Shown here one piece after another: positions 7,401 to 64,000 of a DNA stretch of 64,000 nt (its first letter is position 1; the number at the start of each line of letters is the position of its first letter). The stretch comes from Bugula neritina (taxonomy: Eukaryota > Animalia > Bryozoa), in the NCBI GenBank assembly GCA_964035545.1, contig OZ037765.1:28395504-28459503 (forward strand). Reading direction: 5' to 3'. The notes below the pieces were generated by a model. That model was not told the origin of the DNA, did no database searches, and saw only the letters and a list, made by a program, of their open reading frames with translations. A program made the position numbers and the translations under genes.

Positions 7401-8649
7401 AAAGTTAATACTGTATATTTAGCTTTATTTCTAACCCCTACCTACAGGTTAAGTTATGTTTATTGCTTATTAATCCCATTGGAATAATAATTTCCTCTAG
7501 TCTTGGCTTTGTTGTTGCTGAATGTACAATAATGAGTTCACATTCTGAGCAAAAGGCATGCTGACCTATCTCAGCCGAGCTCAGGGAAATGAACTCAACT
7601 TGGTTCATGTTGTGCTGCTGTAAGAGGAAACTGAACTATTTGTTCATGTGATATCAACTGCTAACATTGATTGCTTTCAGGGTTTACAGACTGAGATGAG
7701 AAGCCACATGGAGCAGTATCAAAGAGAGCATTTAGCTATGCTAGCTGACTCAGTTGAGCAACTCATGTCAAAATACCCGAAACCATCCCCTGACGTTGCG
7801 GCAATGGGAGCACAATTACAAAACTTTTTCTCAGCTTCTACTAGTGCAGAGTGTGCACCTCGGGACCATGCAATGGCTGCTGCCGTTGATTTTGAAGAGG
7901 ATCTAAAAAAGCCTAAGTTAAAGCGGGCTGCCTCATTGGCCACTCAGCCAGAAAAGAGCTTTGTTGAATCTGAGTCTATGAGATATGGAAGTGGTGAATA
8001 TGCTGTGGAACAGTCTGGTGATGTGGTGTTGCAGCTTCGTAATCAAGTAGCTAGTCAGCAACAGCATATTATTGAACTTCAGTCTAAAGTTAATTATTTA
8101 GAGAGCACTGTTCAAGATGCCCGATCAGATTTACAGAATGTTAAATTGGATTTCAAGAGACGCTTGTGTCACGGAAGTTTTGTTTGGAGACTAAAGAATT
8201 ATAAGAAGTTGAGAGAAGAAGCAAGGCTCGGCGCCCCTAACTGTGTGCTTCATAGTCCAGGGTTTTACACTAGTTTTAATGGTTATCAGTTTTGTATAAG
8301 ACTCAATCTAAATGGAGTGGAGAATGCTCAAGGCACTCATTTATCATTATTTATTCACTTGATGCAGTCGGAGAATGATGACATCTTAGCTTGGCCTTTT
8401 ACCGGAAAAGTCACACTGACGATATGCGATCAGCACCAGGTGGCTAGCAAGCGCACTTCTATCTCGGAGACGCTGGTGGCAAAACCTGGTTTAGCAGCCT
8501 TTCAGCGACCAACCACTTTTAGAAACCACAAGGGTTTTGGGTACATGGAATTTGCGCCAATTTCGTATCTTGAAAGTGAAGACAGGTACTTCATCAAAGA
8601 CGATGTGCTGCTTATAAAAGCAGAGATTCGATCAACTTCTGTCTCTTAA
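4482..8649 (+). CDS. TRAF6: TNF receptor-associated factor 6 (RING, zinc fingers, coiled coil, MATH); coding exons 4482-4551, 5100-5229, 5660-5822, 6070-6297, 7281-7358, 7681-8649
   Basis: All introns are GT-AG with consistent phases. [33 protein letters not shown] and PDNFAKREI match the TRAF6 RING region. The MATH domain contains [20 protein letters not shown] and KGFGY. Confidence 0.93.
6363..6603. repeat. 30-bp minisatellite (atatgtagatgctatagcatcatgtcttat), about 8 copies, in a TRAF6 intron
   Basis: Direct tandem copies are visible. The unit contains the palindrome atgctatagcat. Confidence 0.95.
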
Positions 8650-11125
8650 CCAGGCTGCTTGGATTTCAATTAGTTTTTGGCCAGTAGAAATTCCTTTCTT
8701 ATTAGGTAATTTAATATGAGTAATACCAGCTTACTTGTCTCTCTAATCATATACAGAAGCATTCTATTGTAAACATTGGCAGCAATAAGACTTTTTCGTT
8801 TGATTATTTTATTTTGTGTAAATTTTTATTCTAGTTGCTATCTTGTTTTATGTAGTGTGTTGATATATTTGACTTTATTGTCATTGCTGTTTTCATTAAT
8901 AACTTATTGGAAAAATGGATAATTAGATTTAACAATGTAGATTTTATACAGATTTGACTGGAATTTTAGTGTAGTAGAAATCTATGATATTTTTGCCTTG
9001 TTTCAATTATTTATACTTGTTAGTACTGGTGTTGGTACTGGTGAAATTAGAACACCTTTTCGAACCTATACTTGATTACTTCCTGCATTGCTTTTGTTAT
9101 CAAATTACCCAGTCTGCAAAGTGTTTCTCATTCAGTTGATTGATTACCATTTACTGTGTTCTTATTGGCTTAACGAATAGCCAATAGAAACGCAGATTTG
9201 ACATGAGATGAATTTTTTCACAAATATGCTTTGTTTACATAAGTGATAAGTTTTATTCAGCAATACCTACAAAACATGCCATGATCACATAGTCAAGGGG
9301 GTCCAAAAGTGAAGATTTTTATTGTTTAAATGATATTGCTGATTGTTTTTGAGTGTTGAAGTTATTTTAGTGCCCAAAAATTTGGCACTCCTATAATATT
9401 ATATACTGCTTACTAAGCTACTAGGTAAAATGAACTACTGTAATTTAGAAAAGAATGCAGAAGTTGGCAGAAATTTTGTAACTATTTATAACTGATAATC
9501 TGAAGAATAGTATTTAGTTGAAGAGGGTAATGAACTTGGCAAGTTGCTCAAAGTAGCTACCAGCTCCTACTCTAATATACTCAACACCTAAAGCATACAG
9601 ATTTTCAATAATTGTCATGCAACATGAAATGAAGCAGAAAGGTTTATTCCATTGATGTCAAGTAACCAAGTAACTTAGTAGCTTTGCCAAGTTCATGGAC
9701 ACTATAAGATACTGGGCACCATGCAACAAATTTGCCTATTATCTATGGAGATGCGTAAACTTAAAAATTGCAATAATAAAGCTTTATCTTATCAGTGTTA
9801 GTACACAGCTAGAGCATCTAATACGCCTGCAGGCAAATAAAAGCTAAACTTTGATTGCATTGTTTTGCATAAGTTGGCGACATTTGCAAACTTCCTGCAG
9901 TGAAGTAATAATTTAAACACCTGGATTTTATAATTAGCAAATAACAAATATCATAAATAGTAATTTATAATTATTATACTGTATTTGATATTATAATTAA
10001 TAGTGAGAAAGTCACAGTGACCTAAAGTAAAACTTTGCTTTTTATTCACTCAATAATTTCAATAACAACCCAACACCTTTGTAAAATATAACATGACAGA
10101 TTAAAAGTTGAGAAGCATTATTTGTGTAGGGATACTATGATTTTATTTTGCATTTAATATTAGTCTGCTTATACTATTTCAGCAATCTTTATTAATTTAT
10201 TTGATTGATCATCTGTATATTACTTTGGCATTGAATGCTTAAAACCTTTAAAGAGGCAATAAATTATATTAATTCAAATTAGCATAATTTCTTTGATATG
10301 CAAACTGCAGAAACTTTAAAATATCTCCTATGTTTGTTTGACAAGTAATGAGCACTTTAAAACCCTAGAAGTGACTTGACTTTTATATGGCTGAGTTTTG
10401 CTTTTTCTTTAATTTTGCTTAGAGCATTGGATAGGTGTAATAGGAATTGTCTCCTCTTGCAGTTTAACACCGTCTAAACTCTAAGCTAAATAAAAAAGAA
10501 GAATATGTAATTTATTGTATATAATGCAAAATTCAAATTAACATCTGAAAAAAATATAATCAATTTCAAGTAAGTAAATTATTGAAAAAGGCATGATGAT
10601 GATGAACTCTTTATTGATAAAATAATACAAGAAAAAAAAGAAAATACCTCTAGTTGCAGGCAAAGATGAAAGTTAATATTTTCGAATGAAAAAGGCAACT
10701 CTGCATGAAGAGATAACTATCGAAGATTTTGATGGGCCCAAGTTTCTATTTAATGAATATGTTAGAATTTATCATGTAGATAATTTCTAATTTGAATACT
10801 TACGCTCATGACTTTCTCTATAAACAGCTCCAAAGTGGGAGTGACTCCGAGTTCTATAGTTGGCGGTTCTCGAGCTTGAAGTTTGGGGTCCGAGCTTTAC
10901 AAGTATCACTCTCGATCTGGACCCAAAAGCGCGTTCTTCACTAGTAGTACTAGAGTAAAGTTGTGAAACTATTATACTATTTTCTAACACACATATATAC
11001 GGTAAAATTCCAATAACATAAGATTATCGTATTGGTAAAATGTACTCTTCGCCAACTTGATTTAAAAAAATTATATTACAAAATTGAAATTCAAGTTGAA
11101 CTTGAGAACATCGAGCGAGTTCGAC

Positions 11126-14100
11126 ATGGCAGCCCACGCTCAAGAAAACAAATTTGATTTTCACAAGTTGAAGTCTAGCATTCAGGTAGTTACTGTTACA
11201 ACTGTGGCTGTATTGAATATAAACCTACTCAGTTTAAGATAAAAAAGCTATTTTGTCAAGTTGAAATATTTTTGTAAGCTATAGCTAATGCCTAATGCCA
11301 ATGGTAATACTAATACTCAGTAATACTAATAGTAATACTAATACTGTAGTAATACTAATAGTAATACTAATAGACTTAGAGTTAGTGTATAACTAATTAC
11401 TAAGTATAACCATAGCCGACTAGTAGTAGTACTACTTACTTACTTCGATACTTCGACTTTAGCACACGCTAGATCACCATAAGGCGCAAGAGGCGTGCCT
11501 CAGCAGCTTGTTACAATACATTTGACATAGAATTATAACTGTATTTGCATACATTATGCATTTTAAATTTGGCAATTGTAGTACCTTTCAGGTTATCATT
11601 TATCAAGTATTTGGGGAGTTCCAATTCTTAGGTCTCTAATAGTGCGCGGTAGGAAGCTGTTATGATATGCTGTGCACATGGCAGATATCGCAGTTGGTAT
11701 TCCGTTAGAGGCAGCCCTCGTGGTAACGGTAGCGGTTGATTTGTCCCTTGTCAGTTCAGTGTAGCTGGAAGATAATGCCTGATGACATTCTTCTTTGGAC
11801 AGGATCTTCAAAAGGAGGGTTATTCGTAGGCTTTTGCGACGATCTTCCAGTGATGATATGTTGAGTTGTTCTCTTGCATCACTGATGCTAGCCTCCCGGC
11901 CTTTGAGACAGCAGATGAATCTAATAGCTCGGTTCTGGACTAACTCAATTTCTTTCACAAGTTGCTTTGTTACAGGATCCCAAGTGGTTGCAGCGTATTC
12001 TAGTATAGGTCTGCAGAGAGTCATATATGCCAGCAGCTTTGCTTTCTTGGGAGCTCCATAGAGGGATAGCTTTAGCATGCCAAGAACCTTGTATGCTTTG
12101 TTTATTTTCTTAGTTATGTGGCTGTGAAACTTGAGGTTAGATTGTAGTGTAACTCCAAGGTAGGTAATCTCATCTACGTAAGGCAATGTTTCTCCCCCTA
12201 GTCGATATGATGGTAGAATTTGGGGATCTTTGCCAAATGACATGATTCGGCATTTTGAGGAGTTGAACGGCATCTTCCACTTCAGAGACCAATTCTCAAT
12301 CTGTTCAATATTCTTTTGGAATTTTCGGACATCATCTAGGGAGTCCACCTCTTGAAAAATCAGTGTGTCATCAGCAAATAAACTGACACTGCAACTTAGT
12401 AGATCAGGGAGATCATTGATGTAAAGAAGGAATAGGGTGGGCCCCAGGACAGAGCCCTGTGGAACGCCAGAAAAGACTGGTAATCTACCAGAAGAGTGGC
12501 CATCTATGATTACTTGCTGCTCTCGCTTTGTCAAAAAATTCTGGAGCCATCGGAGTATGTGAGGATTAATTCCATCAACGACGCTTAACTTATGTATGAG
12601 TAGCTTGTGGGGGACTTTGTCGAAGGCCTTCTGGAAGTCGAGGACAAGAGCATGAGTGGTGTGAGAGTTGTTCATTGACCTGGCAATTTCATGGAGGGTT
12701 CCACAAAGCTGTGTTTCGCAGGACAAGCCACGACGGAAACCATGTTGACGATTATGGAGGATGGGATCTAACAGTTTATTGAGATAGTGTAGCACAATGT
12801 GTTCCAGTAACTTGCAAGGTATACTGGTTAATGATATTGGTCGATAGTTGTTTGGCATATCTAGCTGGCCTTTCTTGTGGACAGGGATGATGTTGGCTAG
12901 CTTCCATCCCGCAGGAAGTTTGGCACTGCGCAAGGATGCGTTAAAGATTAGTGTTAGGCAGTTGGCTATCAATCTAGTATCGATGCAGAGATGCTCTTTG
13001 TTAAGTCCGTCCGGACCAGGTGCCTTACCAGTTTTGAGATCGTTCAGAAGCTTTTCCACCCCATCGGGAGTCACATTCAGATCATCATCATCAGAGTGAT
13101 AAGGGAGGTCGTCGGTGAAGAAATCTTGCTGGCAGAACTGTTGCTGAAAAAAATTATTGAGTATCTCAGCATTTTCTCGAGGATCAGTTGTGGAAGTACC
13201 ATTAGGGTGAGTAAGTGTCAGCATGGGTTTTGTTTTGTTCTGAATATTCTTCAGATATTTAAAGAAGGGTTTGCTGTTTCCAGCTTCCAATGGTCCGCAT
13301 ACCACTTCAGTGTATAGTTGTAGACCTACTACTACTAGTACTATTACTACGATCATTTTAATTTTGCTTCAAAGTGAAAGTAACAGTTGAGGTTGACTCG
13401 ACATAAAAGTGTATCACTATAATACTGACTATCACTATAGTAATACTCAAATAGTCAGTATGAGTATAACTATAAGTATAAGTAAAACCTGAGGCTAATA
13501 TCAATCAATATCAAATTGAATATGAAATTGAATATGATCAATGATGACTATTTATTAATAATATTAATATTACTATTAGTATTAGTTTAATATTGAACTT
13601 TTTACAATATTTATATTGTAACATAAAATTTAACAGGCTCAAAGGGGTGCTTATGTATTAATTATATTACTATTAGTATTATCATCATTATGCTTATGCT
13701 TAGCCTTATTGCGATAAAAATCACAATGAACTTAAATAATGAATTACTGCTGTATTAAATTTAGCACTAATAACAATAACATTATTGTACAGTTACTAAT
13801 AGTAATTGTGATTCAATGATAATTGTATTTAGATGATCACTGAGCTACCGTGATCTTAGGGTTAGACTGGTGAGTCATAGGTTCTAACCCCAGTAAAGGC
13901 CATTAATGATGTTAGGAAGAGTAACCAGTCATAATTGCTGCTGTGCCCCATCTGAATAAGTCTTTAGCCCATTTTCATCAGGGATTTTTCACAGAGATAG
14001 TGACTATAAACTTGCGCGAGAGTTTATTTACTAATAAACCATACAAGTATACCAGGTCCTAACTTCCATGGTAACACCAAGTCTAACGTTTGGTGTTTAT

Positions 14101-32100: not shown

Positions 32101-35100
32101 TTAGTCATCCACATTAGAAATAACATACAATAATTATAAACTGGTGTATACAGACATACTTTAGTAAAAAAAATAAATGTGTCAAAGAAGCATCAAACTG
32201 AAAAAATGAATTTATGTAAACGTTTGTTTATATAAAAAATAATAATAAGGTAAAGCAACTCCCGCTATGTCTTACATACATGTACAATACTATACAATAT
32301 GTTGGACAGAAATAGCATCACAACACCAATACAGGATGCCTGCAATCCCCACCTTATCTCATCTCTCCACCCCAACCCCCTCTCTCCACCCCTACATTGC
32401 TTCCTCTCTCCACCCCTACCTAGCCCCTCTCTCCACTCACCCGCCAATAGATGAGGGCAGCGACACCAGCTGATTGTCATCTACTTTCAGAGTCGTGATA
32501 TTGCTGAGTCTACCGATACTGTGAGGAAGCGTCTTGAGAAGGTTAGTAGAAAGGTGAAGGTCACTGAGAGAGATGCATCCATCTATCTCATCAGGCAAGT
32601 CAGTGATTCTGTTCTTACACGCATCAAAGTACATCAGCTGTTTCAGATTGCCAATTTCCTGTAAGCAGAAGATGTGGCAGAGTTAAGTGTTGGCAATCAC
32701 ATTTATGGAAACTAACAGACTCTTTGAAAGCCCTCCGTGGTAATTACATCAAGTAGACAGTTCCTACAAGTTTTGAAAATGAATGAATACTTTTCATATA
32801 ATTGCAATTTTTTCTCCATTATTCAAAGCAAAATTTTTTCCGCAGTTTAGCCCCATTCTGAAATTCCATACCACTGCTGAATGCTAGTCTCGACTATATA
32901 AATAATGTAACCGGGCTTTCATAATTGAAGCTGTCAACTTGGAATGAAACAAATTATTGATTGAGGAGAGCAAAGCTAACAATGAACTGCTATTCTGCTA
33001 TCTTCCTTACAAACAATCTCCATACTACTATTCCACTGTTTTCAAATTGACATAATACTGACCAACTACAAACTGAATTCTGCTGAAAATATGAATGCCA
33101 AATGCTAAAACATTTATTGCATAACATGTAACCATGAGAAGAGTTTCTGTTGGGTTGACTAAGTAATAGTTACAGAGATAAAAGTGGTCACAGCCTACCT
33201 TTGGAATACTAGTGATCTGGTTGGAGTCACACCAGAGTTCTAGAAGGTTCTTCAGTGTAGCCACAACAGATCCAGACTGCAAAAATATAAAATTCACTCT
33301 AAATTTCATCAAAATATGAGTTTAACCATTTATAGAAATGGATATCATAAGTTAGTTATTTTGCTTTATTGTTATCAAGACTGAAGAGTTGTGATAACAC
33401 TGAACATTGCAGTTACCAACATACACCTTGTGTAACATTATTATGTATTACACAAACGGAATGTTTCACTTTTCCAAAATGAAGAAAGTATGTAAACTAT
33501 GACCAAAGAATCTGCATGAACCAACTGTAAGCGGTTTATCCCCCATCCAACCCACAAAAATGCATTTATCATGAAACGTCTACTAAGCCAAGCATGAAAC
33601 TTCACCAATCTCTCTATTGCTCAATAGTTCAACTTCGGTTTTTTGTAAAGATTTCTTATTAACTAGGATATATCTAAATACTTGTATAATATTGTGACAC
33701 TGCACATCCACCTACTGTCAACATGCATAATCAAAATGAAGCAATAGCAAGCTCTTCTTACTTCAGGGATGAAATAAGTGGGATTTATAAACTACTTTGT
33801 GTCAAATAATGAATGGAACGGCCACTACAACAGACCCTCTGCTTTATCCACTCAAATATAACTAGTCTATCCGTGTACACAAAGGTGTATGCTATGTGTA
33901 TGTATGCTATGTGTATGTATGCTATGTGTGTGTATGCTATGTGTGTGTATGATATGTGTATGTATGCTATGTGTATGTATGCTATGTGTATGTATGCTAT
34001 GTGTGTATGCTATGTGTATGTATGCTATGTGTATGTATGCTATGTGTATGTATGCTATGTGTATGCTATGTGTGTGTATGCTATGTGTGTGTATGCTATG
34101 TGTGTGTATGCTATGTGTATGTTATGTGTATGCTATGTGTGTGTATGCTATGTGTGTGTATGCTATGTGTGTGTATGCTATGTGTGTGTATGCTATGTGT
34201 ATGTTATGTGTATGCTATGTGTGTGTATGCTATGTGTGTGTATGCTATGTGTGTGTATGCCATGTGTGTGTATGTTATGTGTATGCTATGTGTATGCTAT
34301 GTGTATGTTATGTGTGTGTATGCTATGTGTGTGTATGCTATGTGTGTGTATGCTATGTGTATGTATGCTATGTGTATGTATGCTATGTGTATGTATGCTA
34401 TGTGTATGCTATGTGTATGTATGCTATGTGTGTGTATGCTATGTGTATGTATGCTATGTGTATGTATGCTATGTGTATGTATGCTATGTGTATGTATGCT
34501 ATGTGTGTATGCTATGCAAATACTACACTAAAACACTTTGTGTAATCATTCAGTGAATTCTATTGAGTAAAGCAGAGACAAAGCAAAACATTGTATCAGG
34601 TGAATGAGGTGTAAATTATGAGTTAACCGATTAGTAGGATTAGTAAGTGAGTGGTGCTGTAACAGGGTGGGAGTTACTCTTCAAGGGTGCGCCACCAGCT
34701 ATAGCACACACTTGCTTACTTCTAATAGTTAACATAGTGTAACTGAACCCCAGAATGTATCATATTATTACAAGAATATACTATGGAAGATGCAAGTAAT
34801 AAATTAGGTAATGACAGGCTGAGACTGACCAGTTCTGTGAACTCATTGCAGCCAATATCCAGTCTCTCCAGCTCTGTTAGTCTGGCCAATGACTGTGGTA
34901 AAGTCTTTAAGTGGTTTTCTCTTAATTCTAGAGTCTTTAGCTGTGATAATCTACGGAAATACAATTGTTTTACTGCTGCGAAACATAAAGCCATGATTGA
35001 TGGCACCATTATATAACAATATTTATCAGTTGGCAATGGCAGTGAAATATTTTACAGAAATAGGTCTCCGCCCTGATCATGAGTCAGATAATTGATTTTA

Positions 35101-42626: not shown

Positions 42627-45600
42627 CTATTGTGTATTCAACTTCTGGCGTTTGGCCGATGGACCTTCTGCATCTGGATTAGCCTGTGGAGGTAGGACGA
42701 CTATATTCTTGGATCCAGGTGTATCCCCATCACTGGTAACCACTGTCATTGGGGAGGCCTTCATCTTAGTCATTGAGCTCTTCACTCCATAGTGGTGATC
42801 CAAGTTCTGTGACTGACTACTCTGTTCAAGCAGCTGCATTGAAAATACACAATCTTCAGTACAAAAGGTTAATGTATCATCATTAGCCAACTTCAGAATT
42901 AATATTACATAATATAAACCTAACCTCAATTTTAAAATAGGAAAACCTTGCAGAGCTCAAAAGATTACACAGCAAGAAAACATAATCTAAAACTCAAGAA
43001 TGCCCCAGGTGTTGAGTATACAAGAGATATAATACTGACCTCTCCCATGACAGCAATAGAGGTTTGACCTGTGGCTCCAGCCACTTTCTGTTCAACCAGA
43101 TAGAAGATGTACTCATCATACAAGAGGCGAATCAAATGAAAGGATCCAAAGGAGGCAGCACTTCGCAAAGTCAAATCTCTAATTATCATGGAGCTAAAAG
43201 CAAGAACAGTAGAAAATTATACTATTTGACATCCATAAAAATACTACATGTTATTCACAAACTGTGGGTTTTTCAAAAAATACAGTGCATTCACAATAAT
43301 TCATTATCTTTGTCAATTGCATCATCAGTTATTACTATTTTGTTTAGTAAAAACAAATAAACAATATCAAAATAAAAGCCTAGCAGTGACTAATAAACTA
43401 GAAACATGGAATGCTCAAAATAAGAAACAGAAGGAAAAAAACATTTATGGTACTGCTTTTTAGTAACTTCCCATTAAAGTGAGATCAGTAAAGTTATTAT
43501 TATTTGCATGCTTCCCTGGAAACATAAAAACCCGTGACCGGTGAAGTGTACACGGGCAACCAGACAAAGGGTGGACGTGAAGACAGACCAGCTGGGACAC
43601 AAACTTACCTGTAGAACGACCATTTTAGGAGAAACTGCCGTGCAGCTTTGGTGAAATTCTCGGTCTGTTGGTAAGGCTTGAGCACCTCATCAACAACAGA
43701 CTGAAGCCATGTACTCCACTCCTCTAGAGTGTGTTGGTCCTGGAGGAACCTCTTGAAGTCCTTCTCCAGCTGGGTGACTAGACTGTCTTCACACTGACAG
43801 ACCCACGATGCTTGTTCCTGTCAGAATATACGCACCCAGGTTGACGGAAAGCACAAACATTGTAAAGCACTTGGCTTGAAAAATCAGAATTTCTGGGGTA
43901 CTATATGCTATGTTAAACATACCAGCTAATTAAACTAAAGGTAAGCAATTTAATGGAATTTAGTAAAATTAGAACCGGTTGGGTAGCATACTTATTTTAG
44001 TATTATATTATTTGTATAAGCGTTGTATTATTTATATAAGTATTTATCATATAATTGAAATAGTTTTAAACATTTGGTAGAGTAAGCTGCTTTGAAATGC
44101 AAGCTTATAAGATTAAAAAGCTATAGAATACATGTGATGAGACAACTTTACACCAACCTAACTTTATATACAACTTAGCATGTTGTTGCTATGTACATAA
44201 GAATTCGTCATTTGCAATGCTATAAGGAGTGATATTAAAAAAAACCGTTGCCGTAGAAACAAGAAAGTTAGATAGAATCACAATATCTGACTAATAAAGA
44301 GAGTAGTGAGCTGCTACCTTGACAACCTTGTACGAACTACAAAAGCACCATATCCTGATTTACACAGCTGCTTACACTACACACTTTAAGCAAGTAATAG
44401 AATTACACAGAATGTATATTTTATACAACAATAATTATATTAGACAGCTATAAAAATTTACATCCCATAAAATACTCAACTAGGATACTAAGAGTATGAC
44501 CTCAAAAAGGTTTTTAAAAGTAATGAAATACACTTTTGATAGGTCAGTTTGCAGTATGACGGTATTGAGTTGAAACAAAAATAGTAGCTAGACAGTATCC
44601 CAAACAACAGAAAGAAAACTTTATCAAAATTCAGAGCAAGTATTGAAGAGAACTCCCTGTTCTATATGCATTCGACTAGCTCTACATCTAGTAGTTCATA
44701 TTTTCTGATTGGCAAATTAGGTAGCGCCTACGATTGGCTTACTGATTCTAAACGCTGTAGTAACTCACTCATGAACTCCAACTCCCACATTGAACCATGC
44801 CAACATGTCGAGTCAGCCAAAATTTCGAAGAGAAATAGCGGACACTAGATAAATGTGAAAATTTCTTCGCTAGTAAAGCGGAAACAGGAAACACCAAAAA
44901 CTTTGGCAAGACAAACTTCTTTCAACGACTATGAGTAAAATATACGTAGATATTAATCATAGATGAATAAAATCTGTTGAAAACCAAAAATGTGAAAAAA
45001 ATTCTACTTCGCAATGTTAGAAGTTTTAAACATTGTTGGACAACTTCTAGAGAGAGAGAGACAGCAGCAAATGGAATACGAGATAATATTACCACGCTGA
45101 ACTACTCGTCACCATGGATGTGTTTTGTGCGGTAAATATAAATATGACATAGTTGAAGATGGCACCAATTGTAGCTTTTTTTACTTACCAGCACATTTTA
45201 ATGAAAAACATGAGCAACTGAATTCATAGCCATAAACATTTTATAGGAGATGGTGCTTTACACTGCTAAACTTTAAAAAACATTTCAATTTTAAAATAAT
45301 TTTTCTATTTTAGTATTTATATAATTTATGATCTTGCCCAGCTCCTGATTTAAAATTTTTTTTTACTCGATTATGCATTGAAATTGATAAGATTATAATA
45401 ATATTCATTATTGATTGGGATGTTTAGTAATAGTTACAACACATAATTCAATCGTAAAGTTGGTTGAGTATGATAATGATGGCCAGTATTATCTTACTGT
45501 TTGTTTATTTTAATAATTGATAATAAACTATTTCCTTCCAGTTTTATTAGCTCCGACAGCCCATCAGTGATGTAACTGAAAGGAGAGCTAAGACAGTTGT

Positions 45601-48600
45601 TGTAGTGACTTCTATGTTGTAAATGTTAATTTGATCAATTCTACTTCATATAAATTTAAATATAACTATTGACAATAGTTTTATTAAAACGTTCATTGTA
45701 CTTTTGAAAACATTAATGCGAAGTTATATTATTTCAATCATTTTATGTTAACAGTTGAGAATTTCTGCTAAGTTTTTCAGTTTCTTGTTATATTAATGAA
45801 CATAGTATGTAATTTGTTTCTCAGAAATAATGCCTGTTGGAGTAAATTTACTATCCTCTTAGCAAATAGAATGACTCTGTTGACAAGCTAGTTGTTAGTC
45901 ATTGTGATAAGAAATTCTTTAAAATCATATTCCTATCTTGAGCTAAAAGAGTACTAATCATATCTATTTTAAAGTTTGTACCTTCAACTGAAATAAATGT
46001 ATTAATATGCAATACATACTGCAATAACAAACCAATAACTGCTAAAAAACAAGTAACAATCAACTTTGTTTTAGGACATCATCAATATTAGGAGATATGG
46101 AGATATACCCATCAATACCTGAACATTGGCGAAATCTACTCGGTTCAGATCTGACAGCATCTGAGTTATTTGGGACGAGTTCTGTAGAACCGATCTGGCA
46201 GCCTGAGCCAGGTGATTGAGTGATGTGTATCGACGCAACGTCTGTGAAAATGCGCTAACGGCACCAATCTGTAAAAATACATGAGGATTTATATAACTAT
46301 AATCTATATTCATAGAAAATGTAAGTAATTAATATTAGAATAATAAATATGCAAGGCTCAATAATATTGATTAAATCAAATAAAAATTCAATTTTTTTAA
46401 AATGTGATTTATTGTTAGACCTCTATAACAAATGTTTACTGTCTTATAATGCCTTTATACTATGACAATCATAAATACAGCAAACATGTCATATACATGA
46501 ATGGATATAAGTTTTATAACTACTGTAATTGGTTAGTCGCACTAGGTGGTCACATAACTGTATAATAGTTACATTAAAAACTATGTTAGCACATTTTTCT
46601 ATACTTGAGACACTGGTCAAACATGATAACTTAACTTATCCCACCCCAAGTCCAATTTGCCGAATATGTTCCATTCACTGTTTTGTTTCCAAGACTCATA
46701 GCTTGTTGTAATTATTTCAAACTTGTCTAACATGTACATTACATTCTGTAACACAAGTCAATTACTGATATCAGACTCACCTTGACACTGATCATAGCCT
46801 CAGGTATTCCCCCAATTGATGACCTTAGGGAGGTTTCCAAGCCTTTCGCAAAGTTTCGAATAGTTTGGGTGAGTGTACCTAATAGAGGATACACCAAAAT
46901 AACAACTTATACACTGAATAATATCCATTTACTTGAGACATACTGTGATGCTGTGTGTGAATGGTGAAACTGCTTGTATGCTGTAACCAAGTCAAATACT
47001 TACTAGGTATAGGCCTAAGGACATCTGGCACCAACAACTCAAGTAGCGCTTGGTAGAAACTGTAGTCTGCTTCCTTTACAAACTCCTGTACTTCTGACAG
47101 AGCAGCCAACTTCAACAATTTCTCTTTCGGCAGTTTTGCCTCCACCTCAGGGTCAACACTACAAGTTATTGACACTAGAGTATATCTGTAGGCGATGGTT
47201 GAACAGGTCAAAAATACTCTCAAGTTGCATGTCACACTCATACTTATATGCAATGTATAAGCTAGAGTAAAGTAGATGCTTCAACTAACCTTACATTCGT
47301 CTTCCTCCAAAATGTTTGCCACAAATTCTCAATGAGATTTAAATGTAAATTTTGAACTAAATCTAACACCGCCTGAAATAAACAACACAGAATGTGTTTG
47401 TACATTTACAGTCATTAGCATATGCATCATGTACCAATCAAATATAAAGATAGTGAAACATGAACCTACTTCACAATGCTCTTTGTACATGGTATCAAAT
47501 GTGTTGGCATCACCCATAGTGACACCCTGGGGCAGGTTCTTGCTATCTATAGTTAGATCATTCTGTGGTATGGCCTCCTCGGGGGATCCTAAATACTGTT
47601 TATGTTGCTCAGTGTCCTGACTTGTAGCAGCTGCCTCAGTCTTCATGGCGTTTCCAGCATCTCCCCCATCGGCACCACTGGACTTGGCTATACGTCGGTG
47701 TGGCTGAGTGGCTTGCCTCATCGCTACAGGAGTATCATCAGGCACCATCTGGTTGAGAGGACTGTCGGCCTTGATGCGTATGCCATAGTAGTGGTACTTC
47801 GAGTTGCCCCTAGAACCAGCCAGTAATAACACTGAGTACAATGTGAAAACACGTGACGGCGTACAGGTAGAGGCTACTTCAACGTGAAGGTTTTCCTCAA
47901 TAGTGATGAGTCATCCATGGCGTGTGTTGTCTTAATTTAAACAGAAATTAGTTTCCAGTCTCTACAATTATAACATGCATTTGTGCATCTTAGTAAGAAA
48001 GTTTAATTGAGATCAGCAGCTTACATATACTTTACAACAAAGAAAAACAATTTAAAAAGACATTTCCAAAATGCTAGCACAAGAGCAGCACCCATCCCCT
48101 GTAAGACTGTGTACTTGACAAGTGAAGAGCGTGTTAGAGCGTGAAAGTCCTTCAGCAGCGGCCACGGTTACCTGGTGCCTAAACGCCGGGTCCTGAGGCC
48201 TAAAAATACCGACCGGATAAGTTTGCCAAAACTAGCAGGATTCATTGGGTCGAGCCTAGCCTGGCGACAATGCTGCATATAATGGGCATAGAGAGTAGAG
48301 CGAGGCAGACTAACTCCTTCAGCTACATCATAGTTATCTAGTAGCCATTGAACCTGCAAGTATGTAAGAAACACGGGTGTAGCATCTTTAATCAATGCAG
48401 ATTATCATTACCTTTGCCCCAATCTTCTAGTTTTCAAATCTCTGAATATTGTTCGGACTAGCTTTCCAAAAGATGCAGGATTGGATGCTTCTATTTTCTC
48501 ATTATTGCAATGATGCATATAAAAGTTGTAGAGTGTACATCGAGGCAAGCTTGTACCATCGCAACTTTCAAAGTTAGCTAGCAGCCATTGTACCTAATAT

Positions 48601-51600
48601 ACAGCACAGAGAATAAGAATAATATTGCATGCAACACAATGTTCAGTATATAATCGAATAATATATTAGTAGACTGAGGTTTTTTACTATTCTCATTACT
48701 AGGTTAGGGGATTAGTACGAGCATATATTATTAGAACAGGGCACCCCATCTCATCTCAATCAGACTTGAGCAGTGGTATAACAAAATAGTTAAGTTTACC
48801 GTTCGATTATCGAAACTCACAGTAGCAGGGGCTGCTCTTGTGGTCTGAGCTAGTGGGTATCCTTCGCCGTCCATAGTAGCACCGTGGATGAGGTAGGCAT
48901 GACCTCCCATTTGTTGCACCATTTGTCCAGGGAAACTCTGTATGCCCAACTGTGATAGCAAGGACAACCATACATTTTCAGTTAAATTACATAACAAGAA
49001 GTGGGGTTTCAATATTTTCCAGACTCAGAAATAAATGGGACCAAGTAAACAAGTAGATTATAATCACAAATAACCAGTTAGACCCTAAAATTATCTTCTA
49101 AGTTTGAGACTCTAATAAACAAGTGATATACAAATAATTACATAGAAATGATATTATCTGGACCCGAAAGGCCACGTAGCTCACATGGAACCATACATGG
49201 AACCACCAGTTTCACTAATTATGGTTATGACGGTTTCTAAATCTTTTATTACAGGTCTAGCAGATTTAAAATACGTAAACATTTTCATTTTGATCACGAC
49301 GCTAAGATTTTTAGTCTCAACTCCCAGAAGGTCAAGGTCACTTTGAGAATGATCAAACCGAATATATTTTTAAAAACACTAAGTTGACACTAAAATCTAT
49401 TATTTTACTCAACGGGTAAAAATTGATTATTAAATGAATTTAAAAATAAAAACATTCATGCTGATACTTATTTTATAATATTTATTTATTCAATTAATAA
49501 AACTTTAAATTATAATTTCGTAGTATCAATACATTACCATGAAAAAAAAGATCTTTATGTTAATACACATGCTTTATAGAATTTGCTAAACTTTATAACT
49601 TTTACTGAATTAATAGAAATCAATTTGATATAAAATACAATGCTACCTCTGTATCTCATGGTTCTATTTCCCACGAAATTCCACAGGTCACGAGGAGGGC
49701 TTGGACCACCGTTTTGTGGCTTATGTATGTGTGTGTGAGATATGGAGAAAGCATTGTCATTGTATTTTTAAAGAGTAATAGTACTACGCTTCGTGCAAAA
49801 ATCTCAATTTTGAATTAACTAATGTACAATGAATAAATAAAAATGGCCGAATTTAACAGATCCGTGAGTTAAATAGGTTGTTTTATATGCAGTCGGCTGG
49901 CTCGACATATATTTCTGATTGGCTAATTAAGTTGCGCCTATGATTGGCTTACTAGTTTTAAATGCACAAATTGTTGCTGATGGCTGTGACTGTCATGGCG
50001 CACACGTGCACTCTAACTCACAGTAAATCACACTAACATTTACAATTTCAGTTTCATAGCTTAAGCTCGGCAACTTTTTTATGTAAGAAGTCACTAAACT
50101 TAAATCACATTGTTGATAAATTGATACAGAAGTAATTTTTATTTTTAAAGATTTTTTTAGTAGTGAAACTAAATGCAGTTGTTTTCGTGCCAGTAGTAAC
50201 ATTATAAAGTAAGCCAATATGAGATGCTAACTCATGAGCCAATCAGAAAATGTCAAGCAGCTAATTGTCGAGCCAGCTGACTGCCTATTATAGAAATTTC
50301 CAAGTTAAATCTGGTATTCTACTATGAGCTTAGTGAGATATGGAGGGAGCATTGTAATTGTATTTTTTAGTGAGGAATAGTACTACACTTTAAATTAACT
50401 AATGTAAAATGAATAAAAAAAAATTACTGAATTTTTTATGGTGATGGTGGACAACTAAAATGACCGTTTTTATAACCGATGGAATTTATAAGCACAACAC
50501 TGATACATTTAGTCTTTCTACTTAGGCTTTAATCATTAATTTATATTATATTAATTTAAAACTAGTTTTTTTAATTGCTTCTGAAATGAAATAAAATTCA
50601 AAACAATACATACAAACAAACATACATACAGAGCTAAAAATTTCCGCGTGTGTGTGCTTGTGTGTGTGTGTGTGTGAAAAACAGTTAAACTCTGCAACTT
50701 GCTGCATGCTAAAATTTTGGGAAACTAAAATGTTTTAGAGCTAAATAAAATACACAAGGCATGCACACATATAATAATAAGTCAGTAGGATATTTTATTA
50801 GACTAAATAAGCCTCACCTGTTGGCCAGTTGAGTATCCATGATAGTTGTTTGTGGGTGAATATGTACTTTGAGAATACTCTTGAAATTGGCTGCAATGAC
50901 ATAAATTGTACAACTTGATTCGGAGTTAGAAAACAGGGCACAGCAGGTTCTAAAGATAGCATTCGATATCATATATTACTTTATATAGGAGAATATTGCA
51001 TTAAAAAAAGGTGAATACAACTCACAATGCTGCACACTTTCCAGTTACATAATGTATAATATAGTTTTACAGTATAAAACACATTATGATGGGTAGAATC
51101 AGTATATCAAAGGCTTCTAACTATATAAGTAAGCACCAAGTGATAGAATACCTTTACACTAATGTGTAGTTCTAGCATTAACTTACATGTTACTTTGCTA
51201 TTTATTAACATACATGTTATTTTGTCATGTTACTTATATGTAATTTTGTCATATAACTTACATTTTACTGTGTCATATATTAAGTTACATGCTATTGTGT
51301 CATATATTAACATACATGTTATATTGTTATAATATATTAACTTACATGGTATTATGTCATATAACTTACATGTTATTTTGTCCGTTGGGATATACTATTT
51401 GTTCCTGACCAGTTGTCACGCGGTTGACAGAATCTACATATTGCACAGGATAAACCGTCTGTCCAGCATTTCCATGATCTCCACCTGCATTTCCTGCACT
51501 GGCAGCTGGGTTGGTGACTGCTAGAAAATGCATAGAATTTGCACTAGTTGGAGAATGGTGGTGATGGTGGTGATGGTAATATCCATGGTTCATGCTAACA

Positions 51601-52389
51601 CCTTCGGAAATATGCATTTAAGCAGAAAAATATAACTCTTGATATGTTTCCTTTAAAAAACAAGCAAATCAGATAGGAATTTTCTTCTAATGCTTTTTTG
51701 GTAGCTATGAAGTCCAAATATCTTAGCTTGAGCAGATATACTAAGTATAAGCTGTCACTGTACGTTCAAATGTTGCTCGCCAACAATATAATTCAAGATG
51801 TTTCACCCTCTATAGCTAAAGGATGAATGATTCAACTTTTGTCACGGCTCAACACACATAGACAACTAATGCTATTACCACTAAAAGCGCGCTTTGACTT
51901 CTGCATTACCACCCTGGTTACTATAGGGTCACGCTAACCAATAAATGGGCTTCCTGGCTAAAAATAACAGTATTTATTTGGAATCTCTTGATTGATTTGC
52001 AATTTCTTCTGCTTTCGAATTCCAAAGATCCAACAAGATATTATAGATGTTATAAAAGAATTACTCACCAAATGCAAAAAAATAATTTACACATCTCAGA
52101 AAACTTCCCATTCCAGTACTTCTAAATTTTAATTCCGACTTACACAATGTACACACACTTCATAAAAATGTCACAAAATGATTAGCAAAGACTAACATAT
52201 TTAGTTGATATCAACAGTTGGCAGCATAGGAGTTATACCTGTCACGATATATTGCTGTCCGCTGCCATCACTAGTGGGTTGAATAATTGTGGCCCCTTTA
52301 CTTTGAGTGACTACAAACTGCTGCCCGGTTGACATGTCTCCAGACACAACAATGGTCTTCCTGGTGGGTGCGGAAGTGCTTGCTGCCAT
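42627..52389 (-). CDS. RFX: RFX1/2/3-type (DAF-19-like) winged-helix transcription factor; coding exons about 52239-52389, 51370-51520, 50818-50890, 48821-48949, [48412-48593 or 48172-48353], 47470-47809, 47293-47372, 47004-47158, 46781-46878, 46119-46268, 43609-43818, 43039-43192, 42627-42832
   Basis: DNA-binding domain [60 protein letters not shown]. Also present are the B/C domains and dimerization domain ([49 protein letters not shown]) and a basic C-terminal NLS-like KRQK. Confidence 0.95.
44663..44825. mobile_element. Short degenerate MITE-like element, same family as 49885-50288
   Basis: Shares tttctgattggc.aatta.gt.gcgccta.gattggcttact with 49912-49953 and has imperfect inverted ends. 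Confidence 0.55.
48172..48353 (-). CDS. RFX: RFX DNA-binding-domain exon B (canonical RFX1/2/3 type)
   Basis: ttgcag|GTT...ACC AG|gtaacc; 182 nt; encodes [60 protein letters not shown](R). Confidence 0.95.
48412..48593 (-). CDS. RFX: RFX DNA-binding-domain exon A (divergent duplicate, putative mutually exclusive exon)
   Basis: attag|GTA...CAA AG|gtaatg; 182 nt and open; encodes [60 protein letters not shown](R). Confidence 0.88.
49885..50288. mobile_element. MITE-like element with terminal inverted repeats
   Basis: The left end atatgcagtcggctggctcgac matches the reverse complement of the right end, ataggcagtcagctggctcgac, at 20/22 positions. There is an inner inverted pair tttctgattggct/agccaatcagaaa and no coding capacity. 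Confidence 0.7.
51176..51381. repeat. Degenerate tandem repeat of about 27-31 bp (about 7 copies) derived from an RFX exon/donor junction
   Basis: The unit is approximately aacttacatgttattttgtcatat; the copy at 51363-51381 is the real junction, gacaaaataacat|gtaagtt on the minus strand. Confidence 0.8.
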
Positions 52390-59694: not shown

Positions 59695-62600
59695 TCAACC
59701 GGCATAGCTTTCTAGCTCTTTCAAACTTTCACTGCTGAGACCACAGATTTCACTACAAATAAAATAATATTGCTGAAATATAATAAAGAAAACCACATGT
59801 ATGACTATTGTAGTCAGCTGACAACAATAAATGACAGTATATATTGTGTGAAAATATACTTGCATTGTTTTAAAGCATAGGCAGCAGCCAACATTACAAT
59901 ATATAAACCAATGTATTCTATTCTTTAATATAGTAATAAAACTTAATTTCCAAATAATGAGGGCAAAACCCTTGTCGCAGGTGTCAAAGCTTACAACTCT
60001 AAAACTATCAGTAGTAGCTGTAGGCTGCAAGCACGGTCGAAAGTTACTATTTGAAAATACCAGCATGTGTAATGCAACATAAACAGATGACAAACAATGT
60101 CAGACATCTATTTTAAAGGGAAAGTAACTCCATCTCATTGACAAATTATAATCAATATAATGACATACTAATTTAGCTTTCACTAGCACACCTTATTCAT
60201 AGTAATAACAAGTGTCCAACTATAAAAATCTGAACCCAGGATTTTTTAATTCCACACCATAGGTAACCACCATTCTATGTGGTTGTTATTACTACTAGCT
60301 CATAACCAAGACAAACACGTACACTGTTTTTACTTTTATGGGACTTGTAACATTTCCTTTTGTAAGATATAATTCTCACATGAAAATGCGGTTAGTCTAT
60401 GTTGAGTAGAGACGGGGTGATGCACCAACCGTACCTTATATGAGGCTGGAATGTGGCTGCTATGGAATGCAATGAAGACTTGAGCTGTGAGTAAAGCTCA
60501 ATTCCTAAAGAGTGACTGCTTCTATTGACGTACAGCTCAGTGCTTCTCTTCCCAGTGACTGTAGACACTCTGAAGAGGCATTCTATAGTCTAAACAAACA
60601 CGGAGAATGCTTACATTAGCGGACTTTAACCAACTGCATTGCTGCACAAATATTATATAGTAATTGTCACTAGAGAAACGCTGCATATCATAAAATGAGT
60701 TTATATATAAACATGCTTTACATTTAATGCACTTGTCTTGATATTTAAAGGGACAGACACAATGTTGAGTGAAATATTTCTTGAAAAATGAAAATATGGT
60801 TCAACAGTCTAAAATGTAAAAAGCATGCACGTTGATACCAATATATGCTTGAGCTGTGAGCAATGTAATAAAACTAACCCGAGTCAATGAAATGAGCAGA
60901 TTGATGATTTCTCCAAGATTTTGCTGTACAATACCGTATTTGTCCTCAGTGAGTGAACGGGTGATCAGATTAGACAATGCTGTAACAAAATTCAATGTGT
61001 TTACATGCTCTATTAGCTTTTACATGTTACTTAGAAGAAATATTTTTATATATTGTAAAACTTTTTCATCATAATTATATAGAATGATTAATACAATCTT
61101 CAATTAAATTTAATGAATTATATATTGTTTTTGCAAGTAGTTAATGACCTGTATTCAACTAGTAACACTTTAATAAATTGGTGATGGTTCTCCAGTCAAG
61201 TACCACAAAAGTTAAAAATGATAAAGATAAACACTTTCACTGTTGAAAAACATAGCAACGAGGAAAGCTAAGCCTACGGATGACTGCCTATGAGACACTG
61301 TAAGATAAGGTCATAGGTCAAACATACCACAGACACACCAGATGTGTTTCTGTGAGTCATAAAACAGTTTGGCTGACAGCTTTTCAGGATATTGCTGATA
61401 GAGGAAAGCTGGATAATACCATTTCTTGGTGGCCTGAAATTAAAAGAAAATTGTATAGCATATTTTACCATGATAGAAAACAACTTTGTGTTGTAGAAGT
61501 TGTAACTAAGGCAAGAATAAATTGCATAAAAGTGAAATACAACCCACGCATGATTGTTTGTTCAAACGCAGATTTGTCGATTTGTATGCTATGGTTTATT
61601 GGAAAAAACATTGCACATAGGAAAACAGGTATAATGTTGCCTTCTATAACTTATTGTTCATAGAAATTTATATGAAGCTGCAGTGTGACCTGTTCAAGTT
61701 GTCACATGTACCAGGTTGGCGGACGAAACTCTACGAAGGCCATTAGTCATGTAAAAGAATCCAGTCATGTTGCCACTATAGTTTGAGGCTGAATTTACAG
61801 CCAATATAAAGACCCTTACCTAAAGATTTTACAAGGATTGCTACTATAAACAGATGCACTGTAAACAGTTCACAGCATGTTATGACAAATTCTGTCATAC
61901 AATAGAATACCTGACTTGGTTGAGATGATTTCGGAGAGCTGTTGTACCCAGGCTTCAAAGTCTCTATCTTACTTCCGGCTTCTGAAACAATAAATATTTT
62001 GGCCCACTTGTATGAGTGTCAAGTTTCTAGGTTTGATTTGCTCTTCACAGTTACTACCAAGAGCTTAGAACTTCAGCTAACAAAGACGTAGGACTTAGAG
62101 GCACACAGACAAATAAGCTACCTATTGGCTTCCTATCATCACAACTGTTTATCAACTTCAACAAGATATAATTTCCAGAATAGGTATAAACACCACCATT
62201 GACAGACTCACGGCGTGGCATGATACTTTTGTATGACTCAACAAGCTCTTTGTTGCTGGTTTCAATACGATTGAGCAGCTCTTGAAGTTGAGCCATGGTG
62301 ACGGCAGAAACAGCTTTCCAAACCTTGGGATGTCCACCGGGATTACTCAGGCTGAAGATGTTCTGTCTCCTGACATCGTCAGACCTTGCAGAGAGTTGGT
62401 GGAGGTCTTTGAATGCCAGTATCTACATACAAAGTATCTACATACAAAGTATCTACATACAAAGTATCTACGTACAAAGTATCTACGTACAAAGTATCTA
62501 CGTACAAAGTATCTACGTACAAAGTATCTACGTACAAAGTATCTACGTACAAAGTATCTACGTACAAAGTATCTACGTACAAAGTATCTACGTACAAAGT

Positions 62601-64000
62601 ATCTACATACAAAGTATCTACATACAAAGTATCTACATACAAAGTATCTACATACAAAGTATCTACATACAAAGTATCTACATACAAAGTATCTACATAC
62701 AAAGTATCTACGTACATAGTATCTACATACAAAGTATCTACATACAAAGTATCTACATACAAAGTATCTACATACAAAGTATTTACGTACAAAGTATCTA
62801 CGTACAAAGTATCTACGTACAAAGTATCTACGTACAAAGTATCTACGTACAAAGTATCTACGTACAAAGTATCTACGTACAAAGTATCTACATACAAAGT
62901 ATCTACATACAAAGTATCTACATACAAAGTATCTACATACAATATATCTACATACATAGTATCTACATACAAAGTATCTACATACAAAGTATCTACATAC
63001 AAAGTATCTACATACATAGTATCTACATACAAAGTATCTACATACAAAGTATCTACGTACAAAGTATCTACGTACAAAGTATCTACGTACAAAGTATCTA
63101 CATACAAAGTATCTACATACAAAGTATCTACATACAAAGTATCTACATACATAGTATCTACATACAAAGTATCTACATACAAAGTATCTACATACAAAGT
63201 ATCTACATACAAAGTATCTACATACAAAGTATCTACATACAAAGTATCTACGTACAAAGTATCTACATACAAAGTATCTACATACAAAGTATCTACATAC
63301 AAAGTATCTACATACAAAGTATCTACATACAAAGTATCTACATACATAGTATCTACATGCAAAGTATCTACATACAAAGTATCTACATACAAAGTATCTA
63401 CATACAAAGTATCTACATACAAAGTATCTACATACAAAGTATCTACGTACAAAGTATCTACGTACAAAGTATCTACGTACAAAGTATCTACGTACAAAGT
63501 ATCTACGTACAAAGTATCTACATACAAAGTATCTACATACAAAGTATCTACATACAAAGTATCTACATACAAAGTATCTACATACAATATATCTACATAC
63601 AAAGTATCTACATACAAAGTATCTACATACAAAGTATCTACATACAAAGTATCTACATACATAGTATCTACATACAAAGTATCTACATACAAAGTATCTA
63701 CATACATAGTATCTACATACAAAGTATCTACATACAAAGTATCTACATACAAAGTATCTACATACAAAGTATCTACATACAAAGTATCTACATACAAAGT
63801 ATCTACATACAAAGTATCTACATACAAAGTATCATAGGGGGTTCTACAGTGTGTACAACTGCATGGCCACCAGCCAACAAACACACTACTTGCCTGACTA
63901 GTGAGCGAACTCAAATCTATACAATAATATCTAAAGTTCCAGAATTTTGCAATAAGTCAAAAATATGAAATGTTGGGCCAGTATCACTAGGCAACAGTCT
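59695..64000 (-). CDS. NDC1: Nucleoporin NDC1, 3' exons (the gene continues beyond the window)
   Basis: Exon peptides ILAFKDL..RRQNIFSLSNPGGHPKVW (from 62422), LFYDSQKHIW, LSNLITRSLTEDKYGIVQQNL and LKSSLHSIAATF match the NDC1 C-terminal domain. TGA stop at 59695-59697. Confidence 0.88.
62419..63833. repeat. 15-bp minisatellite (gtatctacatacaaa), about 94 copies, overlapping an NDC1 splice acceptor
   Basis: Highly homogeneous array with cat/cgt variants in blocks; it accounts for the spurious long ORFs at 62282-63968. Confidence 0.98.

Follow-up and report, generated by a model that had tools for sequence, protein, structure and literature searches.

The RFX1/2/3 gene of Bugula neritina very probably carries functional, mutually exclusive, tandem-duplicated DNA-binding-domain exons, which most likely go back to an ancient single duplication and of which the upstream exon looks like the major form in Bugula. 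The gene lies on the minus strand of a 64,000-nucleotide stretch of contig OZ037765.1 (herein termed the window, to which coordinates refer unless stated otherwise). The two exons are named A (48412..48593), encoding a derived version of the domain, and B (48172..48353), encoding the canonical RFX1/2/3 version. They are preceded by the shared exon U and followed by the shared exon D.

Gene architecture and the alternative exons

The gene model comprises 13 exons from 52389 to 42627 and has an open frame of 693 aa with either exon A or exon B; it was searched exon by exon, and the joins were only frame-checked. The first coding exon (52239..52389, with the ATG at 52389) is 71% identical to the N terminus of Watersipora XP_067943527. 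Coding exon 2 (51370..51520) follows from the Watersipora comparison and the frame model, and coding exon 3 (50818..50890) from the loose end of an RNA contig of set X3 at 50822, meaning that it is spliced to exon U (48821..48949), which ends in RAAPAT. Downstream of the pair, exon D (47470..47809; identified by Pfam, the Watersipora comparison, and reading frames) encodes the distal wing (GNSKYHYYG...). Exons E (47290..47372) and G (46781..46878) and the last coding exon (42627..42833), which runs to the stop codon, were placed by the Watersipora comparison and the frames. Four downstream exons score over the cut-off of PF25340, which represents the B, C, and dimerization domains: F (47004..47158), I (43609..43817; 75 bits), and J (43040..43193; 66 bits) as BCD domain, and H (46119..46268; 70 bits) as BCD/dimerization domain. 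PF02257 is passed by both alternative exons, with 75.8 bits for A and 83.2 bits for B at a cut-off of 27. Because PF02257 is present in both exons and PF25340 in the four downstream ones, the gene is of the RFX1/2/3 type.

Exon U can be prolonged in frame by 21 nt (48800..48820; VSFDNRT) up to a second GT donor, and the Watersipora RefSeq model uses this extension together with exon A. The same seven codons and GT donor occur in five bryozoan orthologues; use in Bugula was not seen. The position of the extension is taken by a 48-nt cassette exon in Lingula and by a 102-nt exon in Tubulanus. Within intron 3, a 45-60 nt piece at 49663-49736 is a dispersed repeat that many contigs match with unrelated flanks. 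Elsewhere in the window, a 586-aa reverse-transcriptase ORF (RVT_1) is located at 11596-13356 on the minus strand and a 333-aa TRAF/MATH-domain ORF at 7648-8649 on the plus strand, and long simple-repeat arrays with a 15-nt unit (about 33800-34560 and 62280-63970) create spurious ORFs on both strands.

Exons A and B are each 182 nt long, stop-free, and flanked by AG and GT, and they lead from phase 0 to phase 2; on re-measurement, these features were the same as in the first-pass annotation of the window, which had been made from the letters alone. The encoded peptides share 34 residues over 60 codons and, in addition, the split Arg codon, which gives the 35 of 61 identical positions without indels counted before. 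The many synonymous differences described earlier are likewise present: of the 34 identical residues, 22 are encoded by different codons, synonymous sites are saturated (pS 0.78), and DNA identity is 59%. Exon A encodes three cysteines and exon B one, which matches the previously noted gain of two in A. The whole domain has 76 residues, of which the alternative exons cover residues 2-62 (1DP7 numbering), and its distal wing (SKYHYYG) resides in the shared exon D. In the frame check of the full model, the U-A and U-B joins both have their first stop at codon 694 of 694, whereas the U-A-B join leads to a stop at codon 234 and the double skip to one at codon 192, in agreement with the earlier statement that either exon alone stays in frame and that both or neither cause a frameshift. 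A single long exon made of A, the intron, and B is ruled out by three stops.

Transcripts and control of exon choice

Four RNA contig sets were aligned to 47400-49800; such contigs give no true junction counts and drop rare forms. The junction from U to A (48821>48593) was recovered as a joint at 48819/48591 in the contig sets of two studies (X1 and X3), and in both, the A contigs end at 48411. The intron after A and exon B begin with GT and exon D with GG; a fork between the intron (GT) and exon D (GG) predicts a break after one shared G, as is seen in the A contigs. Exon D itself is without records in all four sets, probably owing to filtering, and the A-to-D and B-to-D joins were deduced from contig break points. 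The depth in X1 is 40.9 for the A contig and 40.6 for the U contig. In all four sets, exon B is found only in low-depth contigs that are continuous with the intron, one of which (X4) ends exactly at the B donor, and this break suggests some B-to-D splicing. The junction from U to B (48821>48353), which the first-pass annotation had also expected, has no joint in the four contig sets. The annotation had further named a never-spliced exon A that is also decayed in relatives, and predominant A+B co-inclusion, as outcomes that would speak against the model; the U-to-A joint is seen, and no A-to-B joint occurs in the four sets, which drop rare forms. Exon A looks like the major form in the Bugula bulk RNA examined, and exon B is probably a minor form, restricted to certain cell types or stages, for which we infer a mature mRNA. 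A poison role for exon A is ruled out, since the spliced form seen contains A and the paralogue described below uses its A-type exon constitutively.

Each mRNA would contain one exon copy, as the branch point in the short A-B intron (48354..48411; 58 nt) would be too close to the A donor; CTACAC, 33 nt from the donor, is a candidate for this branch point. This intron measures 45-65 nt in all six bryozoan genes and is the shortest of the introns measured there, the other bryozoan RFX introns having at least 72 nt and those in Bugula at least 93 nt (by approximate mapping, and for RFX genes only). It is also the shortest of the gene in Lingula (82 nt) and Tubulanus (76 nt). For bryozoans, branch-point candidates were predicted at 24-38 nt from the A donor, and a distance of under 50 nt between donor and branch point is a recognized exclusion mechanism based on steric interference (PMC5740500). 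The sequence thus suggests steric exclusion between A and B in bryozoans, backed by NMD: an mRNA with A+B or with a double skip would carry a frameshift and an early stop and be a candidate NMD target. Because the intron between the tandem exons of Owenia is 251 nt long, steric exclusion is not universal, and therefore the frameshift, and hence NMD, would be the general safeguard. A distant branch point in Owenia was considered but is unsupported, as there are candidates near the donor but AG dinucleotides follow. An RNA hairpin across the A-B intron gave no signal (z-scores from +2.4 to -1.4), and 7-mers shared after exon B across all taxa were not above shuffles.

Just after exon B, a YGCY-rich stretch is found (48042..48165), with 7 YGCY in Bugula compared with 2.6 expected (p=0.001, for a motif chosen after seeing the data). 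At this position, the five orthologues have 5-10 copies and 21 other introns have 0-3, the motif again being post hoc. YGCY is the motif of MBNL. Downstream MBNL motifs promote exon inclusion in differentiated cells of planarians (PMC4978528). As a hypothesis, the cluster could be an MBNL-type splicing element that controls exon B.

Conservation and origin of the exon pair

The orthologue of Watersipora subatra contains A and then B, each of 182 nt and 65 nt apart. Between Bugula and Watersipora, 55 of 60 residues are identical for exon A (pN 0.064) and 53 of 60 for exon B (pN 0.065), with pS above 0.9 in both cases; pN of the constitutive exon F is similar (0.062). These values are in line with the old duplication under purifying selection that had been claimed, synonymous sites being saturated. 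Metagenome contigs contain four more bryozoan-type genes with the pair in the order A-then-B, with 182-nt exons and AG/GT borders. Three of them are orthologues with both exons intact and A-B introns of 60, 52, and 50 nt, and one is of the paralogue type; the species were taken as bryozoans from sequence similarity. The search of relatives that the first-pass annotation had called for thus shows a conserved tandem position, low pN of both exons against Watersipora, and an exon A that is intact rather than decayed.

A second, full-length RFX1/2/3 gene of Bugula on contig 2 (about 14,468,900-14,473,700) has the same exon layout and one A-type domain exon, which shares 77% identity with A and 57-59% with B. 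It matches GenBank KAF6020630, RFX2 of B. neritina. A single A-type domain exon is also found in the paralogue of Watersipora and of two metagenome species. In one metagenome species (L036/L037), the paralogue-type gene keeps both exons with an intron of 45 nt, and therefore the pair existed before the gene was duplicated, B having disappeared from the second copy later. The Bugula genome has eight PF02257 matches; as the paralogue makes an A-type domain constitutively, no canonical RFX1/2/3 domain other than exon B is among them. Four other PF02257 loci (C1:14270674, C4:5638330, C9:10022401, and C3:22730274), of which two are RFX4/6-like, one is RFX5/7-like, and one is weak, show no tandem duplicate within the 10 kb covered. 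The 5' neighbor of the paralogue is an SGT1-family gene in Watersipora and on one metagenome contig. Among the duplicates retained after whole-genome duplication in bryozoans, a preprint lists rfx, without reference to splicing (10.64898/2026.09.16.752000); we infer that the two Bugula RFX1/2/3 genes are this retained pair.

Beyond bryozoans, two tandem 182-nt exons, the derived first and the canonical second, are present in the brachiopod Lingula, the nemertean Tubulanus, and the annelid Owenia, whose locus was traced via a divergent domain in an Owenia protein. A novelty of bryozoans only is ruled out by these pairs. Of the RefSeq RFX2 isoforms of Lingula anatina, two (X2 and X6) contain the upstream exon, and the downstream exon is found in the remaining six. 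The models of Owenia and Watersipora use the upstream exon and that of Tubulanus the downstream exon; none, Lingula included, uses both. At the one locus examined in the mollusc Lottia gigantea (L044 1555-2953), a single exon lies between U and D with no upstream duplicate, and 43 bivalve-type proteins have one common canonical domain. Judged from this one mollusc locus, the exon pair may be absent from molluscs.

Exon trees were built from 60 columns, and topologies were compared by AU tests. In the free tree, all upstream exons stand apart from all downstream and single exons with a bootstrap of 70, which is modest support, and bryozoan B groups with the Lingula downstream exon and not with bryozoan A. 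Four independent duplications are rejected (p=0.022), and neither one origin (p=0.16) nor a separate bryozoan duplication (p=0.19) is rejected. Residue 25 is F or L in all seven upstream exons and H in the 13 others; A12 to C and Y9 to F each occur in six of seven upstream exons. A single origin is favored because these derived states are shared. One duplication would have taken place before annelids, nemerteans, brachiopods, and bryozoans split, after which the upstream copy would have diverged and the downstream copy stayed canonical; following the gene duplication, the second RFX1/2/3 copy would have lost B in most lineages sampled. The phyla concerned separated in the Cambrian or earlier. 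Two side observations concern other parts of the family. Owenia has a second tandem duplicate, of the distal-wing exon (L041 about 9096-9200 and 9266-9373; copies 56% identical), which was not seen in Lingula, Tubulanus, Lottia, or bryozoans, and could hence combine two by two domain halves. RFX domains that have N-F/Y-Y in helix 2 and an altered SLRR motif (P0003, P0007, P0012, and similar ones) fall into a separate clade and may be upstream-type exons from another phylum.

Several other readings of the pair can be set against these data. That it is an assembly artifact, an allelic copy, or a dead exon relic is practically out of the question given the low nucleotide identity of A and B, the continuity of the pair in independent read contigs (X3), and its presence in eight other genes across four phyla. 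Exon B of Bugula might no longer be a coding alternative and be kept as an unproductive or regulatory element, with transcripts that retain the A-B intron or join A and B being degraded, en route to loss as in the paralogue. The lack of a U-to-B joint in four runs, the observed joining of B to the unspliced A-B intron with its three in-frame stops, and the loss of B from the paralogue in Bugula, Watersipora, and two other species would fit such a role, but we consider it very improbable: amino-acid-level purifying selection on B equals that on A, at saturated synonymous sites, and the exon is intact, canonical, and 182 nt long in all five orthologues and the one paralogue examined. Conservation of RFX protein sequence would not be expected of a poison exon, whose reading frame is shifted, and the protein conservation of B speaks against this function.

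Convergence is unlikely, though less so than an unproductive exon B. Herein, the pairs of bryozoans and of the other three phyla would stem from separate duplications, and bryozoan A would not be orthologous to the other upstream exons. The bryozoan A exons do sit on a long branch with helix-3/wing changes common to no outgroup, the AU test tolerates a separate bryozoan duplication, and Lottia has a single exon. Against it stand the same order of derived and canonical exon in all four phyla, the shared states at residues 25, 12, and 9, the rejection of four origins, and the closer relationship of bryozoan B to the Lingula downstream exon than to bryozoan A, all of which argue for the single duplication.

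DNA-binding properties and biological meaning

The domains of both exons are over 40% identical to known RFX domains, and exon A matches 1DP7 with an E-value of 5.6e-20. An AlphaFold model of the Watersipora A-type domain has a pLDDT of 91, with 1DP7 as best Foldseek match (TM 0.80); the A-type domain is thus predicted to fold as the RFX1 winged helix. Exon B, identical to the oyster domain in 50 of 60 positions and with the higher PF02257 score, is a canonical RFX1/2/3 domain, as had been recognized before. None of the positions that are invariant in 35 RFX domains is changed in A (K45, R48, R57, R58, G60, and R62 are among them), and Y67 in the distal wing is common to both forms because it is encoded by exon D. 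K45, R58, R62, and Y67 are residues that we take to be DNA contacts in 1DP7. Nine conserved DNA-contact residues have been described for RFX domains (PMC2873420), and in RFX1, helix 3 and the wing contact DNA (PMC6212790).

A and B differ by 26 substitutions. The oldest of these (H25 to F/L, A12 to C, and Y9 to F) map to strand 1 and helix 2. Those near helix 3 and the wing (I47V, S49T/M, L52R, G53D, R55K, and T61Q) are fixed in bryozoan A exons only, and five of them (G53D, L52R, S49T, I47V, and T61Q) occur in none of 37 canonical domains. The earlier claim that helix 3 and the wing are changed in A therefore holds for the substitutions as such and fails for the distal wing, which lies in the shared exon. 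Similarly, of the proposed differences in affinity, specificity, or cofactor surface, the one in specificity is weakened, since the invariant positions are kept and the helix-3/wing changes are bryozoan-specific. The two proteins would otherwise be identical and have the same dimerization domain. Most likely, both would bind X-box DNA and differ in affinity, flank preference, or partner surface and not in the core motif.

It is somewhat unlikely that A and B recognize different DNA motifs and drive different target sets, in a specificity switch like that of FOXP1-ES. In FOXP1, exons 18a/18b were reportedly described by Gabut and colleagues in 2011 as a mutually exclusive, developmentally switched exon in a winged-helix-type domain, and RFX A/B are likewise alternative exons within such a domain. 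However, base-reading residues and the motif change in FOXP1-ES, whereas RFX A keeps the invariant residues. For such a switch speak the five substitutions foreign to canonical domains, which are located within or next to helix 3 and the wing and are fixed across all bryozoan A exons; at 53-55, however, RFX5 contains a comparable D-x-K, both forms have the distal wing with Y67 in common, and the ancient A/B differences are away from the wing. This question concerns function only and is compatible with the model of mutually exclusive splicing; the preferred reading remains a difference outside the core motif.

Known RFX1/2/3 factors (human RFX1-3, C. elegans DAF-19, and Drosophila dRFX) likewise combine PF02257 and PF25340 and have a winged-helix fold, but the Bugula gene differs in having two alternative exons for the domain. 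A literature search, conducted mostly outside subscription journals, found no paper on an RFX DNA-binding-domain exon switch, in keeping with the first impression that none had been described, and in parts of the supplement to the human mutually-exclusive-exon catalogue (PMC5740500), RFX1-4 have no entry. The Lingula RFX2 isoforms X1-X8 (XP_013412046 to XP_013412055) show that the two domains of the orthologous gene have already been captured by automated annotation; these are database models without comment, and the search yielded no account of the pair or of its age or function. The RFX exon pair is real, ancient, and, in the literature searched, apparently undescribed. Comparable is TCF3/E2A, in which the equal-size tandem exons 18a/18b (E12 versus E47) swap part of the DNA-binding domain of a dimeric factor (PMC6120717); it belongs to another fold (bHLH) and family, and its differences in dimerization and DNA binding were shown experimentally, whereas those of RFX A/B are putative. 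Splice-isoform separation after gene duplication has been described for CALU, U2AF1, and MARVELD3 (PMC4494069), where one paralogue keeps a single homologous exon and the other keeps both, as in bryozoan RFX. Herein, the separation is partial: one copy has A and B and the other the derived A only, and one species has both exons in both copies.

Cilia genes have RFX1/2/3 as their conserved master regulator, whose DNA-binding domain is considered to show almost no variation. That a derived domain has been kept beside the canonical one in four phyla implies a selected function, which was overlooked because gene models usually show one exon. The RFX pair cleanly illustrates an exon duplication after which the gene was duplicated and an isoform then lost, and if the absence from molluscs holds, lophotrochozoan relationships may be addressed with it as a rare genomic character. 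A far-reaching picture, which we regard as speculative and doubtful, would be that of a cell-type-regulated switch that arose before annelids, nemerteans, and lophophorates split and that alters the DNA-binding or partner specificity of RFX. An MBNL-type factor would drive B, bryozoans would rely mostly on the derived domain, and the duplication would group these phyla to the exclusion of molluscs. The canonical and derived forms would then run different ciliary programs, for example, one in the ciliary bands of the larva and another in the lophophore or in sensory cilia. Since the derived domain is the main or only one made by both Bugula paralogues, bryozoan ciliary regulation may rest mainly on a non-canonical RFX.
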